In this document: positions 18,476 through 41,967 of the stretch, piece after piece
Layout: every line of letters starts with the position of its first letter
Position numbering within the stretch: position 1 is the stretch's first letter
The notes under the pieces: generated by a model
What the model was told of the DNA's origin: nothing
What the model saw: the letters and a program-made list of their open reading frames with translations, nothing else
Databases searched by the model: none
Made by a program: the position numbers and the translations under genes
Virus record (IMG/VR): IMGVR_UViG_3300031787_000001
Location: 124,001-188,000 of that record
Strand: one strand, 5' to 3'
DNA: 64,000 nt

Positions 18476-18594
18476 TCCATAATCCCGGATCACCTGTCGT
18501 GTCATCGTATTACACATTCACAAAACTTTAACAAAATAAATTTGGATATAAGGGTATAAATTGGTTAACTTTGACGAAACAAACTTTCAAAGTT

Positions 18595-18876
18595 ATGTCT
18601 TACACAAAAGAAGAAATCAAAATGAACTTGTCAAGAAACCCTAAATGGATAGAAAGAGCGTTGGTTGTCTTACATAACCTCCAAACTACCGAAGAACAAA
18701 TCACAAACGAAACAATCAAAGAGAATGGGGTTGGTTTTAATTCATCGGATAGTCGGTATCTCTCCTATTGTGCGAAATGGATAAAGGGTGGTAATCACTT
18801 AAACGAGAAACACCTCACTAAATGTGGTCAGAAACTCCCAAAGTATTGGAAACAAATACACTCAATGATTAAGTAA
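18595..18876 (+). CDS. Early hypothetical protein
   Basis: ATG downstream of promoter. Confidence 0.8.
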   Translation: MSYTKEEIKMNLSRNPKWIERALVVLHNLQTTEEQITNETIKENGVGFNSSDSRYLSYCAKWIKGGNHLNEKHLTKCGQKLPKYWKQIHSMIK

Positions 18877-18964
18877 CTTCACACTCCACTCAAAACATTA
18901 AACCTCCGATAGTATCGGGGGTTTTTTGTTAGAACTCCGTGTTCACCAGATTCGCTGGTAGATA

Positions 18965-19010
18965 TTTTTTGTGGCGGATAGGTACAGATTAACCTACTCG
19001 CCATGGAAAA
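18965..19010. repeat. TGGC inverted element, spacer 24
   Basis: TTTTTTGTGGC/GCCATGGAAAA. Confidence 0.85.
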
Positions 19011-19128
19011 TTATCCTGATCGCAACAGCGGTTCACGGGGAAAATTCGTTAACAACATTTTAACAATAAAAATTTGGAAATATAAGGTATAATGTCGTAT
19101 ATTTGATAAACAATTAAAAACTACTACA

Positions 19129-19308
19129 ATGGACAAAATCACTCTCACACTCCTTCTCCTTACACTCGGACTAATGGGGTTAACAATGTTATTCTCTCAC
19201 TATATGAGGAATGACAAAATCTCAAACATTTTTCTTCGTGTTTTATTCGGTTTGACAATGATGACATTCACTCTCTTTATGATGGACATTTTTCTCTCAA
19301 ACATTTAA
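19129..19308 (+). CDS. 59-aa two-TM membrane protein (not in ORF track)
   Basis: MDKITLTLLLLTLGLMG.. directly after promoter. Confidence 0.7.
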   Translation: MDKITLTLLLLTLGLMGLTMLFSHYMRNDKISNIFLRVLFGLTMMTFTLFMMDIFLSNI

Positions 19309-19320
19309 TAACTACCAACT

Positions 19321-19659
19321 ATGACACACGAACAACTACACAACTTCGTATCGGAAAAAGGTGAAAGGGAATTTAACCCACAAGAAACCTTACAAGTATT
19401 AACCCACAACAGAACAACATATTGGTCTTGGGGTGTATCTAAACTCCTTAATATGTTTAATAAGGGGTTATGTTTGAAAGTATCAGGACATCACCACAAA
19501 GGTTGGGTAATCATCACACTCGGTTTTACAGACACTTACTCGGTGTTTTATGTATCAAACAATGGTAAAGTCAAAGATGAACAACACTTGGTCTATTTTG
19601 ACGAACTCACCGAAAGGATAGATGATAAAATCGAACGAATACCGATTTACAAACACTAA
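19321..19659 (+). CDS. Early hypothetical protein; no Ala
   Basis: ORF track. Confidence 0.8.
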   Translation: MTHEQLHNFVSEKGEREFNPQETLQVLTHNRTTYWSWGVSKLLNMFNKGLCLKVSGHHHKGWVIITLGFTDTYSVFYVSNNGKVKDEQHLVYFDELTERIDDKIERIPIYKH

Positions 19660-19751
19660 TCACGAAATCGTAATACAGAAACCCTCGACAAAAGTCGGGG
19701 GTTTTTTGTTTTTCCACAGAACTCCGTGTTCACCAGATTCGCTGGTGGTGA

Positions 19752-19805
19752 ATTTATGTGGCGGATCGTATTACAGATAAAGGTGGTATTACACGCCACA
19801 TAAAT
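19752..19805. repeat. TGGC inverted element, spacer 32
   Basis: ATTTATGTGGC/GCCACATAAAT (perfect). Confidence 0.9.
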
Positions 19806-19922
19806 TTTTTGGTTCAGATCCAGGTTTCCACCAGTGAAACTCTTTAACAATAGATTAACAAAATAAATTTGGAATATAAGGTTTAATGATGTATATTTGT
19901 TAAACAATTAAAACATACTACA

Positions 19923-20177
19923 ATGGACAAAAACAAACTAATTAACAGAATTGAAAACATTGGTTTTCTTCTCGGTTGTTTTATCGGTTTATTAACACTT
20001 ATGATGTTGGGGGCGGAACCTACTACTTGGGATGAGGATGGGTTGTACGATTATGAACACCTTTGGGATAAAGGAAATTCGGGTTGGTATGTTATGTGGA
20101 CTTGGGTTTGGTCAGTTGTTACTTTGATTGGGTTGATAGTGGTTAGGTCATTCATTAAGAAAAGTTTAACAAAATAA
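19923..20177 (+). CDS. Small membrane protein
   Basis: Two hydrophobic helices. Confidence 0.75.
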   Translation: MDKNKLINRIENIGFLLGCFIGLLTLMMLGAEPTTWDEDGLYDYEHLWDKGNSGWYVMWTWVWSVVTLIGLIVVRSFIKKSLTK

Positions 20178-20234
20178 ATTTGGTTTTACTCGGTATAAGT
20201 TGTATATTTGTATAAACAATTAAAAACAAAAATT

Positions 20235-20429
20235 ATGAAAAAGTTTTTCAGTTCTATTCTCGGTTTTCACTTGACAATTATGGTTGGGTTGGTTGTTATG
20301 TTTTACTTCAACAACTTGGAAGATAACTACCTAACAATCATTAACAACATTTTCTTGGTTATGATGTCTTTATCCGTTGTGTTATCGGTGGTCTTATGTT
20401 ACTTTGACAAACGAATTTCTAAAAGATAG
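20235..20429 (+). CDS. Small membrane protein
   Basis: Two TM helices; own promoter. Confidence 0.7.
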   Translation: MKKFFSSILGFHLTIMVGLVVMFYFNNLEDNYLTIINNIFLVMMSLSVVLSVVLCYFDKRISKR

Positions 20430-20530
20430 TTGTAGTTTTAATTGTGAACGAAACCACTCCGAAAGGGGTGGTTTTTTTATTTGTGGTATTACACAAAACT
20501 TGAATCGCGGTTCGAGCTGGGATTACACCT

Positions 20531-20576
20531 TTTTCTGTGGCGATCCGTATTACAGAAACCCACTCGCCATAAAAAA
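20531..20576. repeat. TGGC inverted element, spacer 24
   Basis: TTTTCTGTGGC/GCCATAAAAAA. Confidence 0.85.
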
Positions 20577-20683
20577 AGTTTACCAGGACGACAGGTATGA
20601 ATATGGTTTTGAAAAATAAATTTGGAATCAAAAAATATAAGTTGTATATTTGTGTATTATCTAACAAATTAAATTTATATCAA

Positions 20684-21025
20684 ATGAAAGAACAAAATGA
20701 ATGTAATGGAAAAATGTTTCCGAAAGGTTTTTGGTCAAAGAATGGTAAGCCCACACAAAACGCCTTAATGATGTATTTTGTGTATTTGACACATTTACCT
20801 GAAAGTTGGAAAAAGAAAGTAGTACACAAACCCTCACTCGAAAAAACACGACAATACTTTGATGTTGATTATGGTATTGAATGTATGTTAACTTGGGGGA
20901 TACAATTTGGTTGTAAAAATTCTAAAACGTCAGATGAAAGACACCACGCAATGTCTTTGGCTTATCACGACGCTTTGGGTATGATTGGTCAAGGTTACCG
21001 ATACACCGAATTGAAAATTAAGTAG
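20684..21025 (+). CDS. Early hypothetical protein
   Basis: Start reassigned downstream of promoter. Confidence 0.75.
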   Translation: MKEQNECNGKMFPKGFWSKNGKPTQNALMMYFVYLTHLPESWKKKVVHKPSLEKTRQYFDVDYGIECMLTWGIQFGCKNSKTSDERHHAMSLAYHDALGMIGQGYRYTELKIK

Positions 21026-21124
21026 TGTTTGGTTTTAATTGTGAACGAAAAGTCCTCAACGAAAGTTGGGGATTTTTTTTGTCAAGTCACAGACCTCCGT
21101 GTTCACCAGATTCGCTGGTGGACA

Positions 21125-21170
21125 TTTTTTGTGGCTGATCCTATTAGAGAAACCGACAAGCCATAGAAAT
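21125..21170. repeat. TGGC inverted element, spacer 24
   Basis: TTTTTTGTGGC/GCCATAGAAAT. Confidence 0.85.
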
Positions 21171-21278
21171 TTCAGGATGGAAGGTGATCCGAATTCACCT
21201 TCACAAAATTTTAACAAAAAAAATTTGGAATAAGTATGTATATGTTGTATATTTGTATAAATAATTAAAAAAAACATT

Positions 21279-21416
21279 ATGAAAAAGATTTATTCAGTTA
21301 TCGTAGTTATCGTTCTTGTATCATTAACAATGTCCTCTTGTAAAACAAGTGGGTATGGTTGTAAGGGGAAAGAAAGTTGGGGTGGATTGATGAAAAGAAT
21401 TAACAAACCTTATTAG
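21279..21416 (+). CDS. 45-aa lipoprotein (not in ORF track)
   Basis: MKKIYSVIVVIVLVSLTMSS-C lipobox; own promoter and terminator. Confidence 0.7.
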   Translation: MKKIYSVIVVIVLVSLTMSSCKTSGYGCKGKESWGGLMKRINKPY

Positions 21417-21532
21417 TAGTATGGTTGGTTTTAACCCGATGTTTTTACATCGGGTTTTTTATTTTTTTTAACATTTTAGATTTGAAATATAATATTTATT
21501 GTTGTATATTTGTTTAACTAAACCCACTCACT

Positions 21533-21736
21533 ATGAATTTACAATTAAGAACTGAACTAATCGGAAAAAGAATTATGATGATTTTTATGGATGACCCTCA
21601 ACCTATTGAACCAAACACAATGGGTACAATTATCGGAGTTGATGGGTTAAATCAATATCAAGTCAAATGGGATAACGGAAGAAGTTTATCGGTTATACCC
21701 GAAGAAGACCAATTCGTCATTATTGACACAGAGTAG
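21533..21736 (+). CDS. DUF4314-like protein
   Basis: MDDPQPI..GT...VD...QVKWDNGRSL.VIP.ED pattern. Confidence 0.75.
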   Translation: MNLQLRTELIGKRIMMIFMDDPQPIEPNTMGTIIGVDGLNQYQVKWDNGRSLSVIPEEDQFVIIDTE

Positions 21737-21832
21737 TCCGTTCGTTCCCTCATAAAGACAAACCTCAACAGAAATGTTGGGGTTTTTTGTTTCTCCACAG
21801 AACTCCGTGTTCACCATGCTCCCGGTATGTCA

Positions 21833-21878
21833 TTTTCTGTGGCTGATCGTATTACAGGAAGTTAGACGCCAAAGAAAT
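21833..21878. repeat. TGGC inverted element, spacer 24
   Basis: TTTTCTGTGGC/GCCAAAGAAAT. Confidence 0.85.
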
Positions 21879-22270
21879 TTCCAACGACCCGGATCAGGAA
21901 ATCGCCTGTCGGTTATCTTCACAAAGTTTTAACAAAATAAATTTGGAATATAAAGTATAATGATGTATATTTGTTAAACAATTAAAAACTACTACAATGA
22001 AACAAGACAATTCTGACCAATGGATTCAAGGATTAACATTAATAATCTGTTTTATTACACTTGTTATTGTAATCTCCTTAAAGTATTATCTAACGGGTGA
22101 AATCTAAAATAAATTTGGAATATAATAAATAATACCTTATATTTGTGTTATGAAACAGAAATACGAAAATAGATTTTACAAAATTTTACTTTTATTTTGG
22201 ATGATGGTATTCACCTTTGTTTACTTTCAAATAAAATATCAATTAGTTTTCCATTTCTAAAAAACGAAAT

Positions 22271-22423
22271 ATGAAAAATAATTATTTAAGTACAATTAAA
22301 AGAAAGGAACAAGTACAACAAGGAATGTACGATGGTCGTTTCCGTAGTCGTGTGGTGGTAGATAAGAAGAAGAAAGAAAGTAAAAACAAATGTCGTGTTA
22401 AACTTAAAATCAATTATGTATGA
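22271..22423 (+). CDS. 50-aa basic protein (not in ORF track)
   Basis: YDGRFRSRVVVDKKKK; ATGA-coupled to 22420. Confidence 0.6.
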   Translation: MKNNYLSTIKRKEQVQQGMYDGRFRSRVVVDKKKKESKNKCRVKLKINYV

Positions 22424-22629
22424 TACTTGAATTACATTCAGTCGGAAGTGTTATTGACACAGAAACACTATTCACATATCCAATGTTACTAAATGGTGGA
22501 TATGATAAAAATCAAAATGTCCATATTGACGATGTTGATATAGAGTGGTTTCATAGTTTGTCTGATGAAGATTTTGGAACAATAAATGAGTTAATCAATC
22601 AAAGAAACATTAAATCGGAAATAGTATGA
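22420..22629 (+). CDS. Hypothetical protein
   Basis: ORF track. Confidence 0.7.
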   Translation: MILELHSVGSVIDTETLFTYPMLLNGGYDKNQNVHIDDVDIEWFHSLSDEDFGTINELINQRNIKSEIV

Positions 22630-22851
22630 ACAGAGATAGACTAAATAAAATTGAAGAAATTGGTTTTCGTATTACAATGATATTGGTGTTTAGTGTTTTC
22701 ACTATTTGGTTGATTGGAACGATTGTCAAGTTAATAATGATATTGTCGTCATAGTTTAGGTTTGGTTTTAATTGTGAAGAAATCCCTCAACGAAAGTTGG
22801 GGGATTTTCTTTTGGAGGAACTTGAGTCGTGGTTCACCGTGTCTTCAGGGA

Positions 22852-22899
22852 TTTTTTGTGGCTGATCGTATTCAGGTCAACCTCACAAGCCACGGAAAT
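22852..22899. repeat. TGGC inverted element, spacer 26
   Basis: TTTTTTGTGGC/GCCACGGAAAT. Confidence 0.85.
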
Positions 22900-23023
22900 T
22901 TGGTAATCCGAATCACCTGTTTTCCTTCAGGAAATCCTTTCACAAATTTTTAACAAATTATTTTTGGAATAAAAATTTATATGGTGTATATTTGTTATAT
23001 CATTAACAATTAAAACAAACATT

Positions 23024-23326: not shown

Positions 23327-23461
23327 TTAATAATCCAGATCCCGTCCCTGAAATTTTAACAAAACTTTAACACAAAATCCTTTAACAACATTTTAACAAT
23401 AAAAATTTGGAAATAGGTAGTAATAAGTTGTATATTTGTATAAACAATTAAAACAAATTTT

Positions 23462-23989: not shown

Positions 23990-24083
23990 GGTATTACACA
24001 ACCGAAATATAAGGTAGTCATTTGACTACCTTTTTTTATGTCCATACCTATCCACGAGTCGTAGACAGAAGACGCGTCCGAAA

Positions 24084-24128: not shown

Positions 24129-24250
24129 TTCAACATCTCAGTAGACATCTCCTCGTCATCGTTAAATTCATTATGAAAACATTAACAGAGATTTTTTGGA
24201 GATATAAGGTATTACATAGTATATTTGATAAACAATTAAAAACATATACT

Positions 24251-24472
24251 ATGAACAAAGAAACAATCAAAGTGGTGGTGTGTTATTGTAACTCACTTCC
24301 CAAAGGTTTTATGACACTTCGGAATTTCTTAAACTTTACAAATCGTTCGTGGTGGGATAGTACCAAAACTATTGAGATACCAAAAGAGTATTGGGAGAAT
24401 GTCCACATTGGGAACATAGATAGGTATGTTGAAATGTATGAGAATAACCCTAAGTGGTGGAATGTTGTATAA
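24251..24472 (+). CDS. Hypothetical protein
   Basis: Start downstream of promoter. Confidence 0.7.
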   Translation: MNKETIKVVVCYCNSLPKGFMTLRNFLNFTNRSWWDSTKTIEIPKEYWENVHIGNIDRYVEMYENNPKWWNVV

Positions 24473-24550
24473 ATTTTAACAAATTAAATTTGGAATATAA
24501 ATTTATTTGTTGTATATTTGTTCTATCATTAACAATTAAAACAATACATT

Positions 24551-25108: not shown

Positions 25109-25231
25109 TCCACTTCAGGACGACAGGTATGATTCTGATTTTTATTTTAACACTTTTTAACAAAAATAAATTTGGAGTGGAATTGTATATGTTGTATATT
25201 CGTGTATTGTTAAACAATTAAAACTAAACGT

Positions 25232-25456
25232 ATGACAAACTTACAAAGAATTGGTAATTGGTATTCAGTTACAATTAATGATACTAACTACAATGTCCTT
25301 ATTCAAAAAGATGATAATAAGGTTACTTGTGAACCTTCCTCAATTATTGTATTTGACGAAGATTTCAAAGAGGTTGACAAACCAAGTGTGTATGATGATA
25401 TGATAAGTATATTTGAAAAAGTTGACTTCAAATACGATATGATTGATGATGATTAA
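25232..25456 (+). CDS. Hypothetical protein
   Basis: ORF track, promoter upstream. Confidence 0.7.
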   Translation: MTNLQRIGNWYSVTINDTNYNVLIQKDDNKVTCEPSSIIVFDEDFKEVDKPSVYDDMISIFEKVDFKYDMIDDD

Positions 25457-25539
25457 CTAATCTTTAACAAAATAAATTTGGAATGAAAGTTTATATCGTG
25501 TATATTTGTGTATTGTTAAACAATTAAAATTAAAAACAA

Positions 25540-26012: not shown

Positions 26013-26190
26013 TTCTGGATGGAAGGATGCTCCTTCAGAAAATAAAATTTGTTAATAGTTTTTAACAAAATAAATTTGGAATAGGGGTGTATAAGTTGTA
26101 TATTTGTGTTATGAAGAAACTAAAACCTTACATATTTCCGATTATATTGGTTATGTATGTTTTAATTAAAACATTCTTCAAACATTAATT

Positions 26191-26876: not shown

Positions 26877-27096
26877 AGTGGAAGACCAGAGCACCAGTCT
26901 TCAGGAAAAACTTGACTAATTAAAAAAAATGTATTACCTTTGTTTTGGTTTTTCACAGGATATTGGATTAATAACCCCCTTATGTTTCTACATTGAGGGG
27001 TTTTTTGTTTTAACAAAGGTTTAACAATAAATATTTGGAAATATAAGATTTTATTTCGTATATTTGTTCTATCAATAACAATTAAAAATTATTTTT

Positions 27097-27315: not shown

Positions 27316-27441
27316 TCAAAAAGTAACTTAACCCCCGATATTTCGGGGGTTTTTGTTTTAACAAAATTTTAAGAAAATAAATTTGGATTGTGTTTGTATA
27401 ATTTGTATATTTGATTATCATTAACAATTAAATTTACAATT

Positions 27442-27729
27442 ATGAAAAAGTTATTTGTAATATCATTTGTTGTTTTTCTTTTCAGTTGTTCAGTTCAAAA
27501 AGAGTGTAATGTGAAATTTAACCTTTCAAATTTAGATATTGACTTAAAAGATAGTGTTAATATAAAAGTAGAAAGAATTGTTTATACATATCTCGGAAAT
27601 TTTGTTAGGGGTACTAATAATGTTTGGTATCGTCATCGTGGAATAGTTGATTTTAAGGTTGGTGATAGTGTTGTAGTTTTTAATGAGTTCAAAACTTTAC
27701 CTCCTTGTCCTCGTGAGTGGGGGTTTTAA
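27442..27729 (+). CDS. Lipoprotein
   Basis: FLFS-C lipobox. Confidence 0.7.
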   Translation: MKKLFVISFVVFLFSCSVQKECNVKFNLSNLDIDLKDSVNIKVERIVYTYLGNFVRGTNNVWYRHRGIVDFKVGDSVVVFNEFKTLPPCPREWGF

Positions 27730-27810
27730 GAAAACATTAACAAAATAAATTTGGAATATAAAATTTATTGTTGTATATTTGTGTAACATTAACAATTAAA
27801 ACAAAACACA

Positions 27811-28551: not shown

Positions 28552-28814
28552 ATTACCATCCTGAGTCAGCATTTTCCTTCAGAAAAACATTAACAAATTT
28601 TAACAAATTAAATTTGGAATAAAACTATATTAGTTGTATATTTGTATAAATTAAATTGTATGGAACAAACAATTAAAAAAGAAAAGAAAAAAAGTGAACC
28701 GAAGTATTTTACGGATGAAGATGCGAAAAATGTATTTGTTTTTCAAGAACCATATAAAACAAGTGTAAAAGGTAAACCTATTCAAAAATCAATATCATTA
28801 AAATTTCGTAAACG

Positions 28815-29390: not shown

Positions 29391-29520
29391 TTTTCCTGAT
29401 CCGGATCACCTCCTCCTTCAGTAAATTCATTAAGAAAACTTTAACATAAATTATTTGGAAATATAAACAAAATAGATTTATATTTGTGTACTATCTCACT
29501 AACTATTAAACTCAAAAAAA

Positions 29521-30351: not shown

Positions 30352-30468
30352 TTTTACAGTATTTGGGCTGGGGTCGTGATCCGATCCTTTAACAAAAGAT
30401 TAACGTAAATTATTTGGAAATAAAACTATAATAGTTGTATATTTGTGAAACAATTAAAAACAAATATT

Positions 30469-31668: not shown

Positions 31669-31758
31669 CCCTATAAGTGAATCGTGTATAACCCCAGCAA
31701 AAAGCTGGGGTTTTTTGTTGCTTTTCACCAGCCGATCGCAACAGCGCAACAGGTGGGA

Positions 31759-31805
31759 TTTTCTGTGGCAAGAAAATTACAGGGGAAACGACTCGCCACA
31801 GAAAT
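31759..31805. repeat. TGGC inverted element, spacer 25
   Basis: TTTTCTGTGGC/GCCACAGAAAT. Confidence 0.9.
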
Positions 31806-31927
31806 TTCAGATGACGCCGGGCTAAAAAGTTCGTAGCCCAGATCATAAAACACATTAACAAAAGATTAGCACAAATTATTTGGAAATAGAACTATAATAG
31901 TTGTATATTTGTATAAATTAAAACATT

Positions 31928-32973: not shown

Positions 32974-33098
32974 AGTTAAAGGAGCCGTTAAGTGTATAAA
33001 GATTAAACCGACAAAAGTTAAAAAGAAAAAGTAACCCAGAGAAATCTGGGTTTTTTGTTGCTTTTCACCAGCTGATCGCAGCGCAAACGCAGCTCGGA

Positions 33099-33135
33099 TT
33101 TTCTGTGGCAGGATCGACACACTTGCCACAGAATA
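33099..33135. repeat. TGGC inverted element, spacer 15
   Basis: TTTTCTGTGGC/GCCACAGAATA. Confidence 0.9.
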
Positions 33136-33251
33136 TTTTCCTGATCCCGGACATCTTTTTCTTCAGAAATCCTTTAACAAAAGATTAGCACAAATTATTT
33201 GGAAATAGAACTATAATAGTTGTATATTTGTCTAAACAAAAACAAATCACA

Positions 33252-33473
33252 ATGGCTATCAAAAGTAAAAACTCAAAGAAATCAAAACTTGAAATTGACT
33301 TAACTGGTCCAGATGGTAACGCCTTCGTTCTTATCGGTATCGCGGGTAACTTATCAAAACAATTAGGTTTGGATAAAAGTAAAATACAATCCGAAATGAT
33401 GAAAGGTGATTATGAAAACTTGATAAAAGTTTTTGACAAACATTTTGGAAAATTCGTAACTTTATATCGTTAA
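33252..33473 (+). CDS. Hypothetical protein
   Basis: IDLTGPDGNAF motif; start after promoter. Confidence 0.75.
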   Translation: MAIKSKNSKKSKLEIDLTGPDGNAFVLIGIAGNLSKQLGLDKSKIQSEMMKGDYENLIKVFDKHFGKFVTLYR

Positions 33474-33814: not shown

Positions 33815-34023
33815 GAACAATAACAATTCATATCATTGATAGAGATAGTTCACGAACTATGAGTGAAAGTATCAGGGTTGATGGTGTTAAACCGATAGAC
33901 CTTGAAAACAATATTGTTAAATTACTTTCCGATGTTCCTTTCCGTAAATACTATATGGAAACTGAAACAAGTGATGAATTAACAAAGGAAGAATTGGAAG
34001 TTATTGAAAGGATCATTAACTAA
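33811..34023 (+). CDS. Hypothetical protein
   Basis: ATGA-coupled ORF. Confidence 0.65.
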   Translation: MRTITIHIIDRDSSRTMSESIRVDGVKPIDLENNIVKLLSDVPFRKYYMETETSDELTKEELEVIERIIN

Positions 34024-34218
34024 ATTTTAACAAAAATTATTTGGAAATAGAAAGTATTACATTGTATATTTGTAAAAAAATCGTATGACACTACAAGAAT
34101 TAAAAGAACAACTACAAGAAGATTTAATCTCACACTTGGAGGAATTAATCTCACAAGAAGATTTAGACATCGTTTGTAATATAGTAATCAATAATGTTAA
34201 TCAATTAAAACAATAACA

Positions 34219-34767
34219 ATGGGAGCAACAGATTTCAGAACAACAAAAAGAGGTTGGTCAATGTCCGAAGCGTATGACACCGCAGTTGAATATGCGAGAG
34301 ACGAATATGGAAACGATGGTTACAACGGAACAATATCCACAACTCGTGGGGTTATTGATAAGACCTCAATGTTTAAGTCATCAAAACTTTCTATTGATGA
34401 ATTTATTAACAAACATATTGATAGTTGTCAGAAGTGGGGTTCGGCTTGGGGAGTATGTATTGAAGAACCGACACAAAATAAATCTAAGATAAAATCTAAG
34501 GTTACAAACATTGTAAGTAAGGGAACGAAGAAATGGGAGTTGGTTTATGATGTGATTGTTCGTGGAGATAGTGTTAAGTCATTCAATAGTAAGAACGATG
34601 CGGTTAAACATGGTCGTGATTTGGTTGAGAAGAGTAAAGGAAGAGTATCAATAGAAATGAGGAAGAAACTTGTTAATGGTAACACAAGGGTTGCGGAGAT
34701 CGAATATAAAACCGATGGAAAAGAAAAAGAGGGTAAGTATGTTTTCTTCGGAATTGCAGCATGTTAA
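34219..34767 (+). CDS. Hypothetical protein
   Basis: YGNDGYNGTIST motif. Confidence 0.75.
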   Translation: MGATDFRTTKRGWSMSEAYDTAVEYARDEYGNDGYNGTISTTRGVIDKTSMFKSSKLSIDEFINKHIDSCQKWGSAWGVCIEEPTQNKSKIKSKVTNIVSKGTKKWELVYDVIVRGDSVKSFNSKNDAVKHGRDLVEKSKGRVSIEMRKKLVNGNTRVAEIEYKTDGKEKEGKYVFFGIAAC

Positions 34768-34870
34768 CAAAACTTTAAGAAAATAAATTTGGAAAACTAA
34801 TATAATAGTTATATCTTTGTTACTCATTACTAATCTAACTCGGGGACAGGAGTTCTGAACAAATTATCTT

Positions 34871-35614
34871 ATGAATAAGTTTCATGGAAAAAAAGTAGGA
34901 GAAATCTTTGAGACAAAAGATTATTCAATTTTCAAATTCAGAGAGGACAATCGTCCAATCATTCCAAACCATGTTAAGAAGTTAGCGAAGAGAATGTCTG
35001 AACGTGGTTGGTTACCAACATCAGTTGTCACTATTAATGGAAGTGGTGATATTATTGATGGACAAAATCGTGTGACCGCAGCGATGAGTGTTGGTTGTCC
35101 GATTCGTTACAAAGTAGTGAAAGGAGCAGGAAGTGATGAAATGACGGAAATGAATACACTACAAAAGAATTGGTCTCCGTTTGACCACTTACACAAGTTC
35201 GTTGTGAAGGGTAATAAGAATTATGTTGTATTCAATAATTTCATTACCGACTATCCAATGTATAAGTACACCGAAGTCGCGATGTTTCTCAACAACTCAA
35301 TGTCAAGTGTGAAGAGAGATACTTTTGAAAGTGGTGAATATGTTGTAAAGAACGAGAAGAAAGCTCGTGAGTGGGCTAACAACATTCTTGAACTCAAACC
35401 TTACTTTGAGAAGTATTACAACAAGTCAATCTTTGTGAGGGCGATGGTGAAGATTATGTCAAATAAGAAAGACTTTGTTTTTGAAGAGTTTTTACACAAA
35501 GTAAAGTTGAGACCAATGAAGTTAGTTCCGTGTGGAACGGTGGAACAATATGTGGAAATGATTGAGGGTATCTACAACTACATGAGAAAGGATAAAGTGA
35601 ATTTAAGGTTTTGA
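34871..35614 (+). CDS. ParB/Srx N-terminal-domain protein
   Basis: NR..HVKKL, IIDGQNRVTAA. Confidence 0.75.
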   Translation: MNKFHGKKVGEIFETKDYSIFKFREDNRPIIPNHVKKLAKRMSERGWLPTSVVTINGSGDIIDGQNRVTAAMSVGCPIRYKVVKGAGSDEMTEMNTLQKNWSPFDHLHKFVVKGNKNYVVFNNFITDYPMYKYTEVAMFLNNSMSSVKRDTFESGEYVVKNEKKAREWANNILELKPYFEKYYNKSIFVRAMVKIMSNKKDFVFEEFLHKVKLRPMKLVPCGTVEQYVEMIEGIYNYMRKDKVNLRF

Positions 35615-35707
35615 GTTAGATAGTAAGTGTGAACAAAGACCACTCCGAAAGGGGTGGTTTTTTTTGTTACGAACTCAGAATCTGCGGTCCTGAAGACGAC
35701 GGGGAAA

Positions 35708-35718: not shown

Positions 35719-35800
35719 AGGATCAAACTCTTTAACAAAACATTATGAAAATAAATTTGGAAATAGAAAGTATTATATTGTATATTTGAAAAAAAACATT

Positions 35801-36211
35801 ATGATTGAAATGATTAAATCGGAATTGAAGTGGAGAGGAAAAGAAACCTACTCAATAGAAGAAATTATTGAAGTCATTGAGAAGTATAATAAAAAAGAAG
35901 AAACTCATAGAGTTGAAAGTTGTGGGTTTGTTGCCGATATGGAAACCAGACAAATAACTATTGACGATAAAAAACACAACCTACCAAAAAAAGAATTTTT
36001 GATTATTCATTACCTTATGGAAAATAAAAACAAGGTATTGAATAGAGATAAGATACTAAATAAAATTTGGGAAGATGATGTGATTGTAATAAACAGAACT
36101 ATTGATGTTCACATCAGGAGAATTAGAAATAAATTTCCAACAATTCCAATTAGAACAATTAAGGGAGTTGGATATACTTGGAGTGATAGAGAGACTTTAA
36201 CAAATGTTTAA
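35801..36211 (+). CDS. OmpR/PhoB-type winged-helix DNA-binding protein without receiver domain
   Basis: LPKKEF..L, RDKILNKIW, RTIDVHIRRIR.K, IRTIKGVGY; start reassigned to 35801. Confidence 0.9.
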   Translation: MIEMIKSELKWRGKETYSIEEIIEVIEKYNKKEETHRVESCGFVADMETRQITIDDKKHNLPKKEFLIIHYLMENKNKVLNRDKILNKIWEDDVIVINRTIDVHIRRIRNKFPTIPIRTIKGVGYTWSDRETLTNV

Positions 36212-36267
36212 CATAAATTATTTGGAGGTATAATGTTTTAAGTTGTATATTTGTAAAAATTAAAATT

Positions 36268-38256
36268 ATGGTAACTTTACACGAAGAAAAATTTATGGAC
36301 TATAAAATCGGTTTAGCCGGTTCGTTCAAACAATCACTTTACGAAACCTTTTTCAAAGGAGATACGGAGAACAGAAAGAAGTTAATGTCTGTTTTTCCCG
36401 AACTTGAAGTCGCTCAAAGATACGCCTCCGAAAGTGGTTATTGGAAAGGACTTGTGGAGAGATATAATAAACAATACAACACAAACTATAACCCATAAAA
36501 TAATATGCCAACAAGAGAACAAACAGACAAAGTTTTCACTGAATTGATAAGTTTATATGACATCGCCGATGAACTTGAAAACAATGGCGAAGAAGAAAAA
36601 TCAATCGAAATGAGAATTAAACTCAACATTATCGGACAATTTATTCAATCATTAATAAAATAAAATGAAATCACAACAAGTTTTTATTGTAATGTACAAT
36701 GACCGATATGGTAACGGAGACCAGAAGAAAATAGAGGTGGTATTAAAAGATGAAAAAGATTTTAAGAAGTGGTTGAAGAACCATAACTACGATAGGGATG
36801 CAGAACCCGAAACAAAAGAAGAATTTGATTTAATTCCAGTTAACCTTTTAACTTTTGATTAACGATTATTATATTATCTTTACAAATAAAAAAAATTGTA
36901 TGACAACACAACAATTCAACGAGAAGTACAAAGATTACTTGGAGGAAGGACACTATGGTTTAGCCATAGGTGCTGGAGAATTTGTAGAATGGTTAGATAA
37001 AAAGTTTGAGGACTTTGTTAAGAAACCCGGTTTTAGATTTACACAGATTAAAGCGAAATTCGGTTATGGTAGATTTTACGCCGAAGGTTTAACAAGTGAT
37101 GAAGTTCGTGAAGTGGAACAGAGAATTACAGATTTACATTCAGGTACAAAATTAGAATTTTAATTATGGCAAGAGTATCAAAATTAGCACAAAGACAAAC
37201 CTATTCAAACGGACATCAAATTTGTGTTGGATTGACTGGTGATATTGGTTATATATCTATTGAAGATAATAACCTTTATCCCGAAGGTGATAGTCGAGCA
37301 GATAGAAGGGATATGAATTTTAATAGGATAATGGTTCCCGTTATGACAAGGGAAGACCTTAAAGATTTACAGACCGCTATTGGTGAAGTATTAAAAAACT
37401 CAAAATAATGTCATACACAATAGATAAAATAATTCCAGTCAAATACGAATGGGATGATAAATGGACGGTAACCGCAGATCTTCGTGGACTTGAAACCTTT
37501 GAGAACTGCGAAAGTAATTATGATGTGGTTGAAAGATTAAAAGATAATAATGTCCTTTCAAGTAAAACTAGTGAGGATAGTGAATATTGTCAATTCTTTG
37601 CATATTTCAGTACAAAGAAAGCGGCAGAGAACTTTATCAAAAGATTAGGAACTTATATTGAAAAAAGAAAAAAATTAATATCATCTTTGTAATATGGAAA
37701 TTTTAACATTTAGAGAATGGAGTGAGAACTTTGTAAAAGTTATCTTTGATTTAGAGGGTGGAGTAGAAATCAAATCATTTAACAAAACAATTCTTAAAGT
37801 AAAAACCCCAAAGATTGTTAATGGTTTGTTAGAAGAACAAAGTAAAATGTTGTTGAAACATTACACCGATAACTTTGATAAAATACAAAGTCAGTATCAA
37901 GAATTATTAAACGAAGTTATATGACCGCACACCACATAGCAAAAGTTGTTCAAAGTCAATTCGATAAAGTAGATTTCGACGCCATCATTGATAAGTGGAA
38001 ACACATTAAAAGAGAGGATTGTGGTAGAGTATCAGATGAATGGGTTAATACAAGGATTGATGATAAACAATACTATAAGTGGATGAGGGCGTGTTCCTTA
38101 TTAGAGGAACATATTAAAAGGAACTTTGAAACCTTTGAAGAAACTGAATTGGTTTATACTTGGGCGAAAGACCTTTGTATTCAAAAGAACAATGAATTAA
38201 ATAGGTGGCGTCAGTTTGGTGCGTATCAAACATTTTCTCAATTTAGAAAGAGATAA
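36268..38256 (+). CDS. Operon of small hypothetical ORFs (36268, 36665, 36855, 37166, 37408, 37694, 37921)
   Basis: Tightly packed co-directional ORFs between promoter and terminator. Confidence 0.7.
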
Positions 38257-38350
38257 TATGAGAAACCTAATCTGTACCTTTTTAACCCCGACATAATGTT
38301 GGGGTTTTTTGTTGCTTGAACTTTGCTGGTCCTGTGCGCAACAGGTGAGA

Positions 38351-38387
38351 TATTCTGTGGCAGACTAAACACACTCGCCACAGAAAT
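38351..38387. repeat. TGGC inverted element, spacer 15
   Basis: TATTCTGTGGC/GCCACAGAAAT. Confidence 0.85.
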
Positions 38388-38530
38388 TTCAGATGACCGG
38401 GGTCAGGACAGTTTCAGGGTAAAACTATTTATATCTGTTAAGAAAATTTTAACAAAATAAATTTGGAAATACAAAGAAATAAGTTGTATATTTGTAATGT
38501 CATTTAATTATTAACTCAAAACTTTTTCAA

Positions 38531-38800
38531 ATGAAAAGTAAAGTAAAAAAACAAAAACACACCCTACTCAAAGGAGAGGGAGCAAACCAACACACTCTTT
38601 ACGGAGAGTTTAAGATTGATGAAGAAAAGTCCTTTGCAACATTGGAAGTAACAAAGGATAGTGTATTAAAACACGAACAACCTGACGGAAGTTTCTCAAA
38701 CGAACATCAAGCCTTAAAGATTGACAAAGGTAATTGGGTTATGGGAAAACAAGTTGAGTACAATCCGTTTTCTCGTTCAGTAAGTCAAGTTTGGGACTAA
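38531..38800 (+). CDS. Small His-containing hypothetical protein
   Basis: L.GEG..H, LKHE, EH..L.I..G.W....Q.EY.P. Confidence 0.7.
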   Translation: MKSKVKKQKHTLLKGEGANQHTLYGEFKIDEEKSFATLEVTKDSVLKHEQPDGSFSNEHQALKIDKGNWVMGKQVEYNPFSRSVSQVWD

Positions 38801-38826
38801 TTTATTCACACACTAAATCAACTCAA

Positions 38827-39231
38827 ATGGCAAATCCGTTAATTCATTCTAAATCCAGTGTTAAACGCTGGGGTGGAAAGGTAGAAGATTATTTACCTAT
38901 TCACGAACTTATTGATAGTCCAAAAATGACTATGAATAATAATAGTGCGAGGTTACTTACTCACAATACCTGGTTCGCATACCACATTGTTCCGAAAATC
39001 TTTGGTTACAACATTGTTAATTCTGACGGAAAGTCCGTTGATGTTGTAGATATTGCGATGTTACATATTGCAGAAGATTTCCGAATGAAGTTTGTACCGA
39101 CACCACAGGACTATCTTAAACATTTAGAAGTCCAACCCTGGATGAATAATGGAGTTAAGCCCGTTGATAATCCCGAAGCGTACGAAATTGTTAAAAACTT
39201 AAATCAAAAATTACACGATTATGCAAACTAA
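38827..39231 (+). CDS. DUF6915-like protein
   Basis: P..H..SS.KRWGG..EDY..IH; HIAEDF. Confidence 0.7.
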   Translation: MANPLIHSKSSVKRWGGKVEDYLPIHELIDSPKMTMNNNSARLLTHNTWFAYHIVPKIFGYNIVNSDGKSVDVVDIAMLHIAEDFRMKFVPTPQDYLKHLEVQPWMNNGVKPVDNPEAYEIVKNLNQKLHDYAN

Positions 39232-39901
39232 TGAAGCAGTAAAACTCTGGAAGGAGTTAGGTATTACACACGCAAATATGGAGTTCAGTTGTGGTGGAGA
39301 TAGTATGAATGACTACCACTTTACTTTCTACAAGAAAAACGATAGTAAGAAAAAGAATGTCCCCGAAGAAATTGAGGTTAATAGTCCCGAATTGGAAAGT
39401 TACTTTGACAAAGAAGTGTTTGATGAAGTTGAGTTTTATGTAAACTCTGACGGACACTACATTGGGGAGCACGGAAATGTTTATATTGAATTAGATGATA
39501 GTGATGAAGATGAAGAAGAACATACTTTCATTTATTCAAAAAGTGCCAAAAGTGAGTGGTCGGAGAGAATTGAAGAAACAATGGAAATCAAATTATCAAA
39601 GAAGATGTCTAAATTTGTTTCGGAGTATGTTAGTAACATTAACGGAGAAGAAGGGAATTGTACTATCAATTTCAAAAAAGATTTCATAATGTCTGACGAA
39701 CAAGAAAAGTTGGTGGGAGAATTGGAAGAAATTGTATTACAAGAAACCGCAGACTTTGAGCCTTCCTATGATGAAGGGGAGAAAGAAGATTACTATACTT
39801 TCACAACAAATGACGGAGATGATAGAGAAGAATTAACTATCAAAGATGATAAGTTGTTGGTATCTGTTGGAACTTCGTTTATCATTTACAAAGAAGATTA
39901 A
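39221..39901 (+). CDS. Acidic DUF6878-like protein
   Basis: FSCGGDS motif. Confidence 0.55.
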   Translation: MQTNEAVKLWKELGITHANMEFSCGGDSMNDYHFTFYKKNDSKKKNVPEEIEVNSPELESYFDKEVFDEVEFYVNSDGHYIGEHGNVYIELDDSDEDEEEHTFIYSKSAKSEWSERIEETMEIKLSKKMSKFVSEYVSNINGEEGNCTINFKKDFIMSDEQEKLVGELEEIVLQETADFEPSYDEGEKEDYYTFTTNDGDDREELTIKDDKLLVSVGTSFIIYKED

Positions 39902-39929
39902 ATTATTAACAAATTAAATTAAATCAGTT

Positions 39930-40601
39930 ATGCAAATCGTTATCAATAATTTACAATTTCCGTATGACATTGGTTGTCGTATTTTGAAAGTGAAACACAA
40001 AGATTGTCCTTTCAGTCAGTTGGAAGATATTTGGGAAGATATTACCCCGATTACTTTCAAAGAGATAGCCCAATTAGAGAACTTGGAACAACGCCGTGTG
40101 GCTATGTTGAACTATGGGTTAGATAGATTGGTCAAAGAGATTAAACCCGAATTGATTGATAAGAAAACATTGAAGAAAACAACAACTTGGGTTAGTCAAG
40201 ACGGACAACTTGTTACCAAAAAATTCAATGACACTTATGAACTTTACAAAGTTAATGGGGAAGTTTTCGGTAAGGCTCGTAATTCTTGGTCAAAACCTGA
40301 TGATTGTTACTATGTAAAGTGTAAGGACACAAGTACCGACAGAGAGTATTTCATTTGGGTTGATATGAAAAGTGTGGCAAACACAAATGGTCAGGGTTGG
40401 AATTGGGATATTAAAAAGGTCAATGCAATTCAGGCAATTGCTTGGACTATTCAAACGGACATTCCCGAAGGTTGTATTGAGAAGATTGTAAGACAGGGAG
40501 ATTGTGTGTTGATTAAACCGATAGGGAAGAAAGTAAAGTCGGAAAGTACAAGACACTTAACGGAAAGTGAGTACAAAAATCTGTTGGTCGCTGAGAGTTA
40601 G
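39930..40601 (+). CDS. DUF6745-like protein
   Basis: NLEQRRV, C.DTSTDREY..WV, AIAWT, RQGD. Confidence 0.6.
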   Translation: MQIVINNLQFPYDIGCRILKVKHKDCPFSQLEDIWEDITPITFKEIAQLENLEQRRVAMLNYGLDRLVKEIKPELIDKKTLKKTTTWVSQDGQLVTKKFNDTYELYKVNGEVFGKARNSWSKPDDCYYVKCKDTSTDREYFIWVDMKSVANTNGQGWNWDIKKVNAIQAIAWTIQTDIPEGCIEKIVRQGDCVLIKPIGKKVKSESTRHLTESEYKNLLVAES

Positions 40602-40689
40602 TAGTTTTTGACAAATGAAAGGGGGTACAATTAGTACCCCTTTTTTTATGCACTTTTTGTGCACTCGATCTGCATATTAACAGGTGAGA

Positions 40690-40726
40690 TTTTCTGTGGC
40701 GGATCAACTATACTCGCCACAGAAAA
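40690..40726. repeat. TGGC inverted element, spacer 15
   Basis: TTTTCTGTGGC/GCCACAGAAAA. Confidence 0.9.
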
Positions 40727-40835
40727 TTCTTGGTTCAGATCCTGAAATTTTTAGATATAATATCTTAACTAAACTTTAACGAAAATAAATTTGGAATCAA
40801 AATATATAAGTTGTATATTTGTAAAAATTAAAATT

Positions 40836-41600
40836 ATGATTTACACAACTAAAGCTCAAGCAAAAAAATTAACGGGTATCGGTTACCTGGGGTCGGTTAA
40901 CTTAACTACCAAACATCAGAAGGCGTACAAGTACAATGAACTTACTTATAGTTTATACCTCGCACCCGCAAAGTCAAGTGGTTATGAGGTTTGTCCTATG
41001 AGAAGTGAAGAATGTACATTGCTATGTTTGAACGAATCGGGAATGAATAAAATGACACAGAAGGTAAAGGGTGATGTTATTAATGAATCTAGAATTAAAA
41101 AAACGAAATTATTCTTTGAACACAGGGAATTTTTTGTTAATTGGATGATAGATGAAATATACACCGCAAAGAAAAAGGCAGATAAACTCGGTCACAAGTT
41201 CAGTGTTCGTTTAAACAATACATCAGATATAACCCCCGAAAGTTTTTATGTGACATATAAAGGAGAAGTGAGAAATGTATTACAGATTTTCCCCGATGTT
41301 AAATTTTACGATTACACGAAAGTTCCGAAACGAATTGAATTGTTAAAGAAGTACAATAACTACGATTTAACATTTTCATTTAGTGGATATAACTTTCCCG
41401 ATTGTATTAGTATGTTGAATAATGATGTTAGAGTGGCGGTCGTATTTAGAAAAGAATTACCCGAAACTTTCTGGGGTCGTAAAGTTATTGACGGGGATGA
41501 ATACGATATGAGATACTACGATGAAAAAAATGTTATTGTAGGTTTGAAATATAAAAGTGTTAGAAACAAGTTAAAGGATGATTACAAGTTCGTTGTTTAG
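40836..41600 (+). CDS. Phage GP88-like protein
   Basis: LYLAPA, VCP..C..CL, VRLN.TSDI, FYDYTK, IDGD..D.R. Confidence 0.7.
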   Translation: MIYTTKAQAKKLTGIGYLGSVNLTTKHQKAYKYNELTYSLYLAPAKSSGYEVCPMRSEECTLLCLNESGMNKMTQKVKGDVINESRIKKTKLFFEHREFFVNWMIDEIYTAKKKADKLGHKFSVRLNNTSDITPESFYVTYKGEVRNVLQIFPDVKFYDYTKVPKRIELLKKYNNYDLTFSFSGYNFPDCISMLNNDVRVAVVFRKELPETFWGRKVIDGDEYDMRYYDEKNVIVGLKYKSVRNKLKDDYKFVV

Positions 41601-41690
41601 TAGTTTTTGTTTTGATAGAGAACCCACCAGTAAAATGGTGGGTTTTTTATTGCTGTTACCAGAGCAGATCGCAGCGCAAAGCACAGTGGA

Positions 41691-41835
41691 ATTTCTGTGG
41701 CAGAATAGTTTTATTGATTATCAATGAGTTATGAAAATAGCAAAAGTTGCAAAAGTTGCAGCAACACCAGAGCAAGTTGCCAGATTCAGAGCTATGGATT
41801 TTCTGTGGCAGACATTTGTATTACGCCACAGAATA
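41691..41835. repeat. Expanded element: half-site 41691-41701 plus pair 41799-41835 (spacer 15)
   Basis: TTTTCTGTGGC/GCCACAGAATA. Confidence 0.85.
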
Positions 41836-41967
41836 TTTTTACCGTGCCGGGCTGGGGTCGTGATCAAAAATATTTTTGCAAAATTTTAACAAAATATATT
41901 TGGATTATAACTTTATCCGTTGTATATTTGTGATGTCATTAATTATTAAACTCTAAATTTTATTAAC

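Follow-up and report, generated by a model that had tools for sequence, protein, structure and literature searches.

Do the presumed early genes of a large phage with Bacteroidota-type promoters answer only to RNA polymerase, or are they tied to a host signalling protein? We addressed this question for a phage genome of 286,785 bp, starting from a 64,000-nt stretch (hereafter the window; positions 124,001 to 188,000 of IMG/VR record IMGVR_UViG_3300031787_000001). The original prediction, made from sequence alone, was that about 25 early promoters carry a tandem TTAACA-like repeat of 11-bp (sometimes 10-bp) period ending about 7 bp before the -33 TTTGG. It held that these promoters are wired to a host two-component regulator, possibly sensing phosphate, and that the phage produces a phosphorylation-independent mimic of this regulator to lock them on or shut them off.

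To test whether the repeat is real, motif occurrences were counted against expectation. The exact motif TTAACA-N5-TTAACA gave 8 hits against 0.10 expected, and the degenerate motif TTMASA-N5-TTMASA gave 19 hits against 0.63 expected, the latter within window 17.5-38.5 kb; all hits of both motifs lie on the + strand. Genome-wide, at 11/12 or better and a period of 10-12, there were 83 tandem hits against about 31 in shuffled sequence. The whole excess lies in window 17.5-38.5 kb on the + strand at 11-bp period, and elsewhere in the genome tandem boxes occur at chance level. In this stretch 24 hits are followed by TTTG at 7 nt, while no hit outside it is.

The promoters in window 17.5-42 kb were then tabulated (30 rows). 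Both boxes match at 5/6 or better in 24 plus-strand promoters, of which 7 are exact. The proximal box ends 7 bp before TTTGG in 27 of the 30 rows, and the period is 11 bp in 24 rows and 10 bp in three. No third box is present. Information content is about 1.0-1.8 bit per box position, with a low-information, A-rich 5-nt spacer. The core elements are of the Bacteroidota sigma-A type (-33 TTTG and -7 TAnnTTTG): TTTGG and TATATTTG are separated by 19-20 nt (20-21 nt counted from the TTTG core) in 28 of the 30 rows. This assignment rests on sequence, and metatranscriptome contigs are only compatible with it. The observation on which the original prediction rested is therefore confirmed, and its example sites at 19049, 19844 and 36197 are exactly as it gave them. 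The features are collected in the table.

Coordinates (window positions) of the box-bearing promoters and of the winged-helix gene
Position	Strand	Feature	Boxes	Remarks
17519..17535	+	Box pair in the divergent control region	exact pair	Inverted relative to the leftward promoter (-33 at 17505, minus strand)
17626..17655	+	Box pair followed by A7 and TTTGG	TTAACA/TTAAGA	No recognisable -7 element
17801..17857	+	First rightward promoter	exact pair	Variant -33 (TGATTG); -7 TATATTTG 32 nt after the proximal box
18517..18573	+	Boxed promoter	TTCACA/TTAACA	
19049..19105	+	Boxed promoter	exact pair	
19844..19899	+	Boxed promoter	exact pair	
20155..20210	+	Boxed promoter	TTAAGA/TTAACA	
21200..21255	+	Boxed promoter	TTCACA/TTAACA	
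21456..21512	+	Promoter	proximal box only	
21918..21973	+	Boxed promoter	TTCACA/TTAACA	
22939..22994	+	Boxed promoter	TTCACA/TTAACA	
23356..23438	+	Two box pairs before one promoter	two exact pairs (23356 and 23382)	
24171..24227	+	Boxed promoter	TTATGA/TTAACA	
24466..24520	+	Promoter	proximal box only	
25147..25202	+	Boxed promoter	exact pair	10-bp period; gap 8; -7 TATATTCG
25453..25508	+	Boxed promoter	TTAACT/TTAACA	
26052..26106	+	Boxed promoter	TTAATA/TTAACA	10-bp period
27010..27066	+	Boxed promoter	exact pair	
27358..27413	+	Boxed promoter	TTAACA/TTAAGA	
27726..27781	+	Boxed promoter	TTAAGA/TTAACA	
28590..28644	+	Boxed promoter	exact pair	10-bp period
29430..29486	+	Boxed promoter	TTAAGA/TTAACA	
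30389..30445	+	Boxed promoter	TTAACA/TTAACG	
31855..31911	+	Boxed promoter	TTAACA/TTAGCA	
33174..33230	+	Boxed promoter of the conserved 73-aa gene	TTAACA/TTAGCA	
34016..34072	+	Boxed promoter	TTAACT/TTAACA	
34764..34819	+	Boxed promoter of the ParB-like gene	TTAACA/TTAAGA	
35732..35788	+	Promoter of the winged-helix gene	distal exact, proximal TTATGA (4/6)	
35801..36211	+	Receiver-less OmpR/PhoB winged-helix protein, 136 aa		Two N-terminal helices, then the canonical DNA-binding domain
36197..36253	+	Boxed promoter	exact pair	Overlaps the last five codons and stop of the winged-helix gene
38438..38494	+	Boxed promoter	TTAAGA/TTAACA	
40765..40821	+	Boxed promoter	TTAACT/TTAACG	Gap 8
41875..41930	+	Promoter	proximal box and weak distal box (TTTGCA)	

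We next examined the winged-helix protein. A profile search matched Pfam Trans_reg_C over residues 57-126 (1.1e-20; 74 bits against a cut-off of 26.2), and no Response_reg match was found. It is the only such gene in the genome. The best PDB matches are the DNA-binding domains of RegX3 and PhoB, with further hits to ArlR and others. The AlphaFold2 model (pLDDT 83) predicts the canonical fold, with strands at 37-60, helices at 63-74, 82-93 and 99-111, and a C-terminal hairpin wing at 117-127. The protein has 136 aa, compared with about 230 aa for host regulators, and its alignment to the Aquirufa regulator starts at residue 121 of the latter; it thus lacks the N-terminal receiver domain that defines a two-component response regulator. 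The recognition helix, RTIDVHIRRIR, is nearly invariant with the host regulators. In a phylogeny, the receiver-less proteins form one phage clade apart from host regulators (99/98 support), which includes members in phages without boxes. One detail of the original prediction, that the gene's own promoter has the box, requires correction: only the distal box is perfect there and the proximal one is degenerate, while the perfect pair at 36197 belongs to the next gene.

To investigate whether the boxes could be sites for a host regulator, the 250 nt upstream of the 79 Bacteroidota response-regulator genes closest to the phage protein were searched. A TTAACA tandem at 11/12 or better and a period of 10-11 occurs in 30% of these regions, compared with 0-2% for controls with a reversed motif, wrong periods or shuffles. 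An unbiased scan of tandem hexamers, leaving out those with fewer than three different bases, placed TTAACA first, in 24 of 79 regions, while the best hexamer at control periods reached 7; the 79 loci are not phylogenetically independent. In these hosts the tandem lies at variable distances from the -7 element. All 25 exact sites in five host genomes are intergenic (25 against 11 for the reversed control). By contrast, 0 of 21 host rRNA upstream regions, a set that does not include the true host, carry the TTAACA tandem, and 10 of 21 carry phased A6. The composite of boxes and promoter is not enriched in host genomes, occurring once in 401 Bacteroidota genomes against 7 for the control.

No link to phosphate was found. 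The nearest host regulator is an orphan without phoR or pst neighbours, and the genes at exact host sites are not Pho genes (E1 dehydrogenase, FkbM methyltransferase, NrtR-type regulator, Sua5, POT transporter, MarR, rhodanese and others). The phage protein scored 81.5 and 71.4 bits on the PhoB models NF053854 and TIGR02154, over the DNA-binding domain only, far below the equivalog cut-offs of 270 and 296 bits. The box also matches the E. coli ArcA repeat at least as well as a Pho box (PMC4173790).

We then asked whether boxes and protein occur together. The same boxes are present at the same place in the relatives L005/L006 and L011, whose winged helix is 50-53% identical, and at least 33 further viral stretches carry 2-12 composite hits each. 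However, four 90-100% complete phages of 173-178 kb (and a fifth, 87% complete) have 14-18 such boxes and no Trans_reg_C gene. Conversely, two complete 34-kb phages, and the relatives L001 and L014, have the gene and no boxes. This weakens the idea that the phage protein is the reader of the boxes. Overall, the interpretation in the original prediction is partly supported: the tandem geometry, the receiver-less nature of the protein and the comparative link to host response regulators hold, the phosphate connection is not supported, and the role of the phage protein as reader is weakened.

We tentatively favor the following explanation. The boxes are a real cis-element of one promoter class, namely host sigma-A-type promoters driving a run of small, individually terminated, presumably early genes. 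If the TTTG is placed at -36 to -33, the boxes lie at about -60 to -55 and -49 to -44, and an A-rich stretch (AAATAAA) fills the space down to -33. The repeat unit, (T)TTAACA plus AAAn at an 11-bp period, is the recognition pattern of an OmpR/PhoB-family dimer bound head to tail, and tandem dimers are the rule in this family (PMC11825685). The most likely reader is a response regulator conserved in Bacteroidota whose own genes carry the same tandem upstream. The phage protein, which keeps the recognition helix and wing of the family, would be a constitutive copy, most likely binding the same sites without needing phosphorylation, both on the phage promoters and on the host regulon. What the analysis establishes is the element, its fixed geometry, its conservation in related phages and in many unrelated ones, the nature of the protein, and the enrichment of the same tandem at host regulator genes. 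Binding itself, the identity of the binder, and the suggestion that binding helps RNA polymerase from an upstream (class I-like) position are inferred, the last because the core elements stay intact and the spacing to -33 is rigid; repression remains possible, and the phage protein may add to the effect or shut it off later.

Several findings argue against this explanation. The promoters already have near-consensus core elements, so that an activator seems unnecessary. In canonical OmpR/PhoB activation the box displaces the -35 contact (PMC11825685), but here the -33 element is intact. C-to-G changes at box position 5 are tolerated (TTAAGA, 7 boxes), which would suit minor-groove or shape readout as well. 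Host rRNA promoters carry phased A/T elements at the same position and period, and the boxes could be a variant of those. The phage protein and the boxes are, as described above, not needed for each other.

Phage early promoters are usually thought to depend only on the host polymerase. A whole early promoter set wired to a host two-component regulator would mean that the infection program senses host state at its first step, and a receiver-less phage copy of that regulator would add a new kind of takeover factor. The composite element also provides a searchable signature for early regions in uncultured phages, a defined strong-promoter module for Bacteroidota genetics, and a predicted recognition sequence for an uncharacterized, widespread Bacteroidota regulator. 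A bolder and less likely extension is that many lineages of uncultured phages with Bacteroidota-type promoters, including this one, gate their early promoters on one conserved host OmpR-family response regulator, whose own genes carry the ArcA-like TTAACA tandem. Exact tandem sites precede 2-oxoacid dehydrogenase E1 genes in two of five host genomes, and the start of infection would then read the physiological (perhaps redox or energy) state of the host. A subclade of these phages would have added a receiver-less copy of the regulator to override or prolong that signal.

The main rival, which we consider less likely, is that the boxes are an RNA polymerase-intrinsic, UP-type element, with two subsites read by the two alpha C-terminal domains and optimized by phages for very strong early promoters, as in T4. 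No transcription factor would be involved, and the winged-helix protein would act elsewhere. The position between about -40 and -60, the one-helical-turn period and the rigid distance to -33 are those of UP subsites, and T4 early promoters are UP/-35/TGn/-10 promoters with extra conserved positions (PMC2988021). The consensus core elements are as in strong factor-independent promoters, a Chryseobacterium rRNA P1 promoter has TTAAAA-N5-TTAAAA-ATAAAG-TTG in the same register, many box-bearing phages lack any OmpR-type gene, and C/G interchange at box position 5 is tolerated. Against this, a conserved C (1.2-1.8 bit) in each box breaks the A-tract, the host rRNA upstream regions examined use phased A-tracts instead of the TTAACA tandem, and the composite is not enriched in the 401 host genomes. 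The same genome has sigma-A-type promoters with plain A/T upstream elements and no boxes (genome 87-89 kb; window 42.4, 43.1 and 46.0 kb), so two upstream types coexist. In the box-less relatives L001 and L014 only the AAATAAA next to -33 is conserved, making that stretch the better candidate for the UP subsite. In hosts, moreover, the tandem is enriched at regulator genes, without a fixed distance to the -7 element.

A second, unlikely alternative is that another, unidentified phage protein, shared by the box-bearing phages and possibly delivered with the virion, reads the boxes, while the winged-helix protein only reprograms the regulon of the host regulator. This would suit the dissociation of boxes and gene in both directions and the presence of members of the receiver-less clade in phages without boxes. 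Most early-region proteins have no recognizable family, and a few small proteins are shared between this phage and box-bearing contigs. However, no candidate was found: the most widely shared small protein (window 33252-33473, phrog_1933) is also present in Methylophilales phage Melnitz, which has no box excess. In addition, the box has the exact architecture of an OmpR-family site, and that family is what the phage encodes.

That the boxes have no function of their own and merely travel in promoter cassettes spreading by duplication and gene conversion, like the promoter-stem-loop cassettes of T4-type phages, is very unlikely: long conserved intergenic cassettes (terminator, two further hairpins, boxes, promoter) do recur in the region, but the boxes are conserved while the 5-nt spacer and the flanks vary, are kept in short intergenic regions without the cassette and inside the 3' end of a coding sequence (36197), and are conserved in distant phages whose surrounding sequence differs.

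Comparison with characterized systems shows both parallels and differences. The E. coli ArcA site consists of direct repeats (ATGTTAAAAA) 11 bp centre to centre (PMC4173790); its core TGTTAA is the reverse complement of TTAACA and, leaving aside orientation relative to transcription, both are tandem direct repeats with A/T-rich flanks, the ArcA site being read by an OmpR/PhoB-family regulator. ArcA sites mostly overlap the core promoter and repress, whereas here the pair lies upstream of an intact -33, and the phage protein scores lower on the ArcA model (48 bits) than on the Bacteroidota PhoB model (81.5 bits). Pho boxes of E. coli PhoB and B. subtilis PhoP likewise combine a 6-7 bp core with a 4-5 bp A/T-rich spacer at an 11-bp period, and the B. 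subtilis PhoP half-site is TT(A/T/C)ACA. The best named families of the phage protein are PhoB models, and its recognition helix equals that of PhoB at the contact positions. However, the E. coli core is CTGTCAT, and Pho boxes replace the -35 element, which the phage boxes do not.

UP elements and T4 early promoters share with the boxes a conserved sequence between -40 and -60 on dozens of very strong phage early promoters that use unmodified host polymerase (PMC2988021), but UP elements are A/T tracts without a conserved C. T4 MotA with its MotA box (PMC2988021) and the phi29 protein p4 exemplify one phage DNA-binding protein plus one box shared by many promoters defining a temporal class. 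The p4 protein binds upstream of -35 and activates or represses through the alpha subunit. Here the candidate protein instead belongs to the host two-component family, and the occurrence of the box in phages without the protein points to a host reader. SARPs, ToxR/TcpP and ChxR are receiver-less or phosphorylation-independent OmpR-type winged-helix regulators acting on tandem repeats. None of these is known to be phage-borne, and the phage protein keeps only the tail of receiver helix alpha-5 plus a new 22-residue N-terminus.

The window is bases 124001-188000 of a single 286,785-bp viral record. The record is linear, 86% complete by CheckV, and has a G+C content of about 30%. A nucleotide search of GenBank phages with window 30-42 kb, and with loci of box-bearing contigs, returned no useful match, and an Rfam scan of the window returned no family. 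The genome encodes a single OmpR-type gene (35801-36211) and two sigma-70-like ORFs elsewhere. Gene orientation flips near window 17.5 kb, and from there to about 47 kb small plus-strand ORFs follow one another, most of them without any Pfam family. Terminator-like hairpins are in excess in this stretch (35 against 9.9 expected in 17.4-37.3 kb). The designation of these genes as early is inferred from this layout. Metatranscriptome contigs contained pieces 100% identical to parts of 34.2-38.9 kb, for example 34839-35631, which lies between the predicted start and the terminator, but at a depth too low to map starts, and with no cover over the winged-helix gene.

We first examined whether the TTAACA tandem is a real feature of these promoters, and the observation made in the original prediction was confirmed. 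Exact TTAACA-N5-TTAACA occurs 8 times against 0.10 expected, and the degenerate form 19 times against 0.63, with all hits on the plus strand. Anchoring on the core promoter revealed one repeated architecture, consisting of box, 5 nt, box, AAATAAA, TTTGG, 19-20 nt and TATATTTG, which is the -33/-7 promoter type of Bacteroidota. Of the 30 promoters tabulated, 24 have both boxes at 5/6 or better and 7 are exact. The proximal box ends 7 bp before TTTGG in 27, and the period is 11 bp in 24 and 10 bp in three. No third box is present. The boxes carry 1.0-1.8 bit per position, while the spacer carries little. Over the whole genome, the excess of tandem boxes lies only in this stretch and strand, and elsewhere counts equal those of shuffles. 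Other sigma-A-type promoters of the same genome have plain A/T-rich upstream sequence and no boxes. In each boxed promoter, the conserved sequence around -33 itself matches the -7 consensus TAnnTTTG, so that each holds two such motifs about 28 nt apart.

Features of the early region and of other parts of the same genome. Coordinates are those of the window unless stated otherwise.
Position	Feature	Details
17450-17880	Divergent control region	Outward-facing promoters, a 123-bp-spaced direct repeat (17577 and 17700), and five TTAACA tandem pairs in both orientations; lies where gene orientation and GC skew flip
18326-18352, 18937-18960, 19722-19750, 21099-21125, 21805-21830	Second conserved hairpin	GTGTTCACCAGATTCGCTGGTGG plus a T-run, directly following the intrinsic terminator in five cassettes
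18.9-41.9 kb, e.g. 31755-31810, 33095-33140, 38347-38392, 40686-40731, 41795-41840	Inverted repeat	(A)TTTCTGTGGC - 12 to 27 nt - GCCACAGAAAT; in at least 15 intergenic cassettes, 40-60 nt upstream of the boxes
19066-19077 (example; each boxed promoter)	Conserved sequence around -33	ATAAATTTGG
33252-33473	73-aa protein	phrog_1933, unknown function
34871-35614	ParB-like protein	phrog_12305, 1.1e-28; encoded just before the winged-helix gene
35801-36211	Winged-helix protein	136 residues; Trans_reg_C domain at residues 57-126, no receiver
36197-36213	Box pair of the next gene's promoter	Encodes the last residues (TLTNV) and stop of the winged-helix protein
42.4, 43.1 and 46.0 kb	Sigma-A-type promoters	No boxes
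Genome 87-89 kb (87.6-89.1 kb; outside the window)	Four sigma-A-type promoters next to tRNA genes	AAAAAGTTTTAAAAAGAT before TTTG, no boxes

The promoters next to the tRNA genes closely resemble those of the relative L014 and host rRNA promoters, and represent a second, A-tract type of upstream element in the same phage.

Next, we analyzed the winged-helix protein. Its closest solved structures are the DNA-binding domains of RegX3 and PhoB. An AlphaFold2 model (pLDDT 83) shows two N-terminal helices followed by the canonical sheet, three helices and wing. The local alignment to the nearest full-length relatives (Aquirufa and other Bacteroidota regulators, 45-55% identity) begins at the end of receiver helix alpha-5, and the recognition helix and wing are nearly invariant between phage and host proteins. 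The C-terminal tail encoded by the box pair of the next gene is lacking in relatives P0002-P0004. In a tree, 18 receiver-less phage proteins form one group split from host regulators with 99/98 support, and the box-bearing phages form a supported subclade inside it (96/85). This is therefore an established phage family, not a recent capture.

To investigate whether the boxes and the gene occur together, related phages were examined. Relatives whose protein is 50-53% identical (loci L005/L006 and L011) have the same boxes at the same place, including perfect pairs before their own winged-helix gene. More distant phages with a family member at 39-46% identity (loci L001/L002, L003/L004 and L012-L015) have no recurrent tandem hexamer and no box near the gene. 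The search of box-less relatives for any other recurrent tandem hexamer, or for a box before the winged-helix gene, covered L001 (as the locus rather than the whole record), L003/L004 and L012-L016, and none was found. Two of the more distant phages are complete 34-kb genomes with no site at all, even with one mismatch allowed.

Conversely, a scan of IMG/VR for box-N5-box-N7-TTTGG found at least 118 stretches. Single hits are near chance by our estimate, but 33 stretches not from this phage have 2 to 12 hits, all with the same gap, the same -33 and a -7-like TAnnTT element 19-20 nt further on. The composite TTAACA-N5-TTAACA-N7-TTTGG-N19/20-TAnnTT is a widespread promoter type in uncultured phages of 32-37% G+C (IMG/VR loci L154-L271, for example L158, L186, L195, L209, L216 and L221). 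In some of them the spacer is also fixed (ATTTC), and the -7 reads TAnnTTTA or TAnnTTAG instead of TAnnTTTG. Five phage records of 167-178 kb (87-100% complete, four of them 90% or more) carry 14-18 strand-biased tandem boxes each, against 0-4 for the control pattern. These have no Trans_reg_C in six frames, and no match to a profile of the phage family at E up to 1. Four partial contigs likewise have none. The boxes and the phage gene are therefore dissociable in both directions, and the primary reader of the boxes should be something these phages share, most simply a host component.

The 73-aa protein was considered as an alternative reader. It is present in all five of these large box-bearing phages, and 54-67% identical homologs are found in 17 box-bearing viral stretches. 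However, it is also present in Methylophilales phage Melnitz (60.6% identity), which has no box excess, and this candidate was rejected.

We next asked whether the boxes reflect the host polymerase or a host regulator. The composite is not a general host architecture, giving 1 hit in 401 Bacteroidota genomes, against 7 for the reversed control. Host rRNA promoters, the best place to see the polymerase's own upstream preference, carry phased A-tracts, for example TTAAAA-N5-TTAAAA-ATAAAG-TTG in a Chryseobacterium. None of 21 distinct rRNA upstream regions has the TTAACA tandem, while 10 have tandem A6. The position and period resemble the phage boxes, but the conserved TTAAC core does not.

By contrast, in the 250 nt upstream of 79 Bacteroidota regulator genes found with the phage protein family, a TTAACA tandem at 11/12 or better and period 10-11 occurs in 30%. 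Controls give 0-2% for the reversed motif, for periods 8-9 or 13-14 and for shuffles, and 11% upstream of other ORFs of the same loci. In an unbiased count of tandem hexamers, leaving out those with fewer than three different bases, TTAACA ranks first, in 24 regions. The next hexamers are its shifted versions, and the best hexamer at control periods reaches 7 regions. These loci are related to one another, with several Chryseobacterium among them, and the distance from site to -7 varies in hosts, being about 10 nt in Aquirufa, and 20 and 31-32 nt elsewhere. Exact sites in five host genomes number 25 against 11 for the control, and all 25 are intergenic. Autoregulation is common in this family (PMC4913102, for PhoB). 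The simplest reading is that this regulator subfamily recognizes TTAACA-N5-TTAACA. The best hits to the PhoB model NF053854 in 41 genomes gave only 2 of 18 upstream regions with the tandem, and the signal therefore belongs to the subfamily nearest the phage protein, not to PhoB-like regulators in general.

Comparison with known sites shows that the E. coli ArcA site is two repeats ATGTTAAAAA spaced 11 bp centre to centre, with TGTTA as the conserved core (PMC4173790). TGTTAA is the reverse complement of TTAACA. The unit of a core plus four A/T-rich bases is also that of Pho boxes, and the best named models of the phage protein are PhoB models, but with scores far below their cut-offs. The original prediction had suggested that a host two-component regulator, possibly responding to phosphate status, controls the early genes, and that the phage makes a phosphorylation-independent mimic of it. 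This interpretation was supported only in part. Nothing ties the system to phosphate. The nearest host regulator is an orphan, and the one genome with a bona fide Bacteroides-type PhoB has no tandem before it. Genes next to exact host sites include 2-oxoacid dehydrogenase E1 in two genera (host loci L130 and L134), FkbM methyltransferase (L132/L147) and an NrtR-type regulator (L137/L144) in two Chryseobacterium-like genomes, a cytochrome c, MaoC, rhodanese, Sua5, a POT transporter and a MarR. The dehydrogenase and cytochrome hits fit an ArcA-like theme, but this is only a lead. At these host loci, together with L017 and L030, exact tandem sites lie before the same kinds of genes in related genomes, and in Aquirufa and a Spirosomataceae genome they lie 10-20 nt before the -7 element of the regulator's own gene, as in class II activation. 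This hints at a small conserved regulon of an uncharacterized regulator.

We found no description of this composite promoter, or of phage-borne receiver-less OmpR-family proteins, in the searchable literature, and papers on large aquatic phages of Bacteroidota say nothing about promoters (PMC12619734; PMC9723584). The parts are of known kinds, while their combination and its spread among uncultured phages are new.

Placing TTTG at -36 to -33 puts the boxes at -60 to -55 and -49 to -44. The AAATAAA between them and -33 is conserved also in the box-less relatives, and is the better candidate for a proximal UP subsite. In this family, activation usually works by tandem dimers that displace the -35 contact, and upstream-only binding can repress (PMC11825685). 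Here the core is intact and consensus, so strict dependence on an activator is unlikely. The rigid 7-bp gap argues for a direct contact with polymerase rather than simple occlusion. We therefore tentatively favor recruitment or stabilization from an upstream position by the host regulator, in which case the receiver-less phage protein would act as a signal-independent copy on the same sites and on the host regulon. While the promoter element, its geometry and its distribution are established by the sequence analysis, binding by either protein and its effect on transcription are inferred. An UP-type element read by the polymerase retains substantial weight as an alternative, because of the position, period, promoter strength and the tolerance of C/G exchange at box position 5. 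A later shut-off role for the phage protein, of the phi29 p4 kind, cannot be excluded.

The intergenic cassettes contain further conserved elements. With the second hairpin following the intrinsic terminator, each early gene seems to be insulated by two or three hairpins in a row. The inverted repeat upstream of the boxes gave 12 strict matches against 0 expected, and five copies have GCCAT, which keeps pairing only as G-U in plus-strand RNA. With this sequence it is absent from L011/L005, and Rfam has no match. The ParB-like protein could be its reader.
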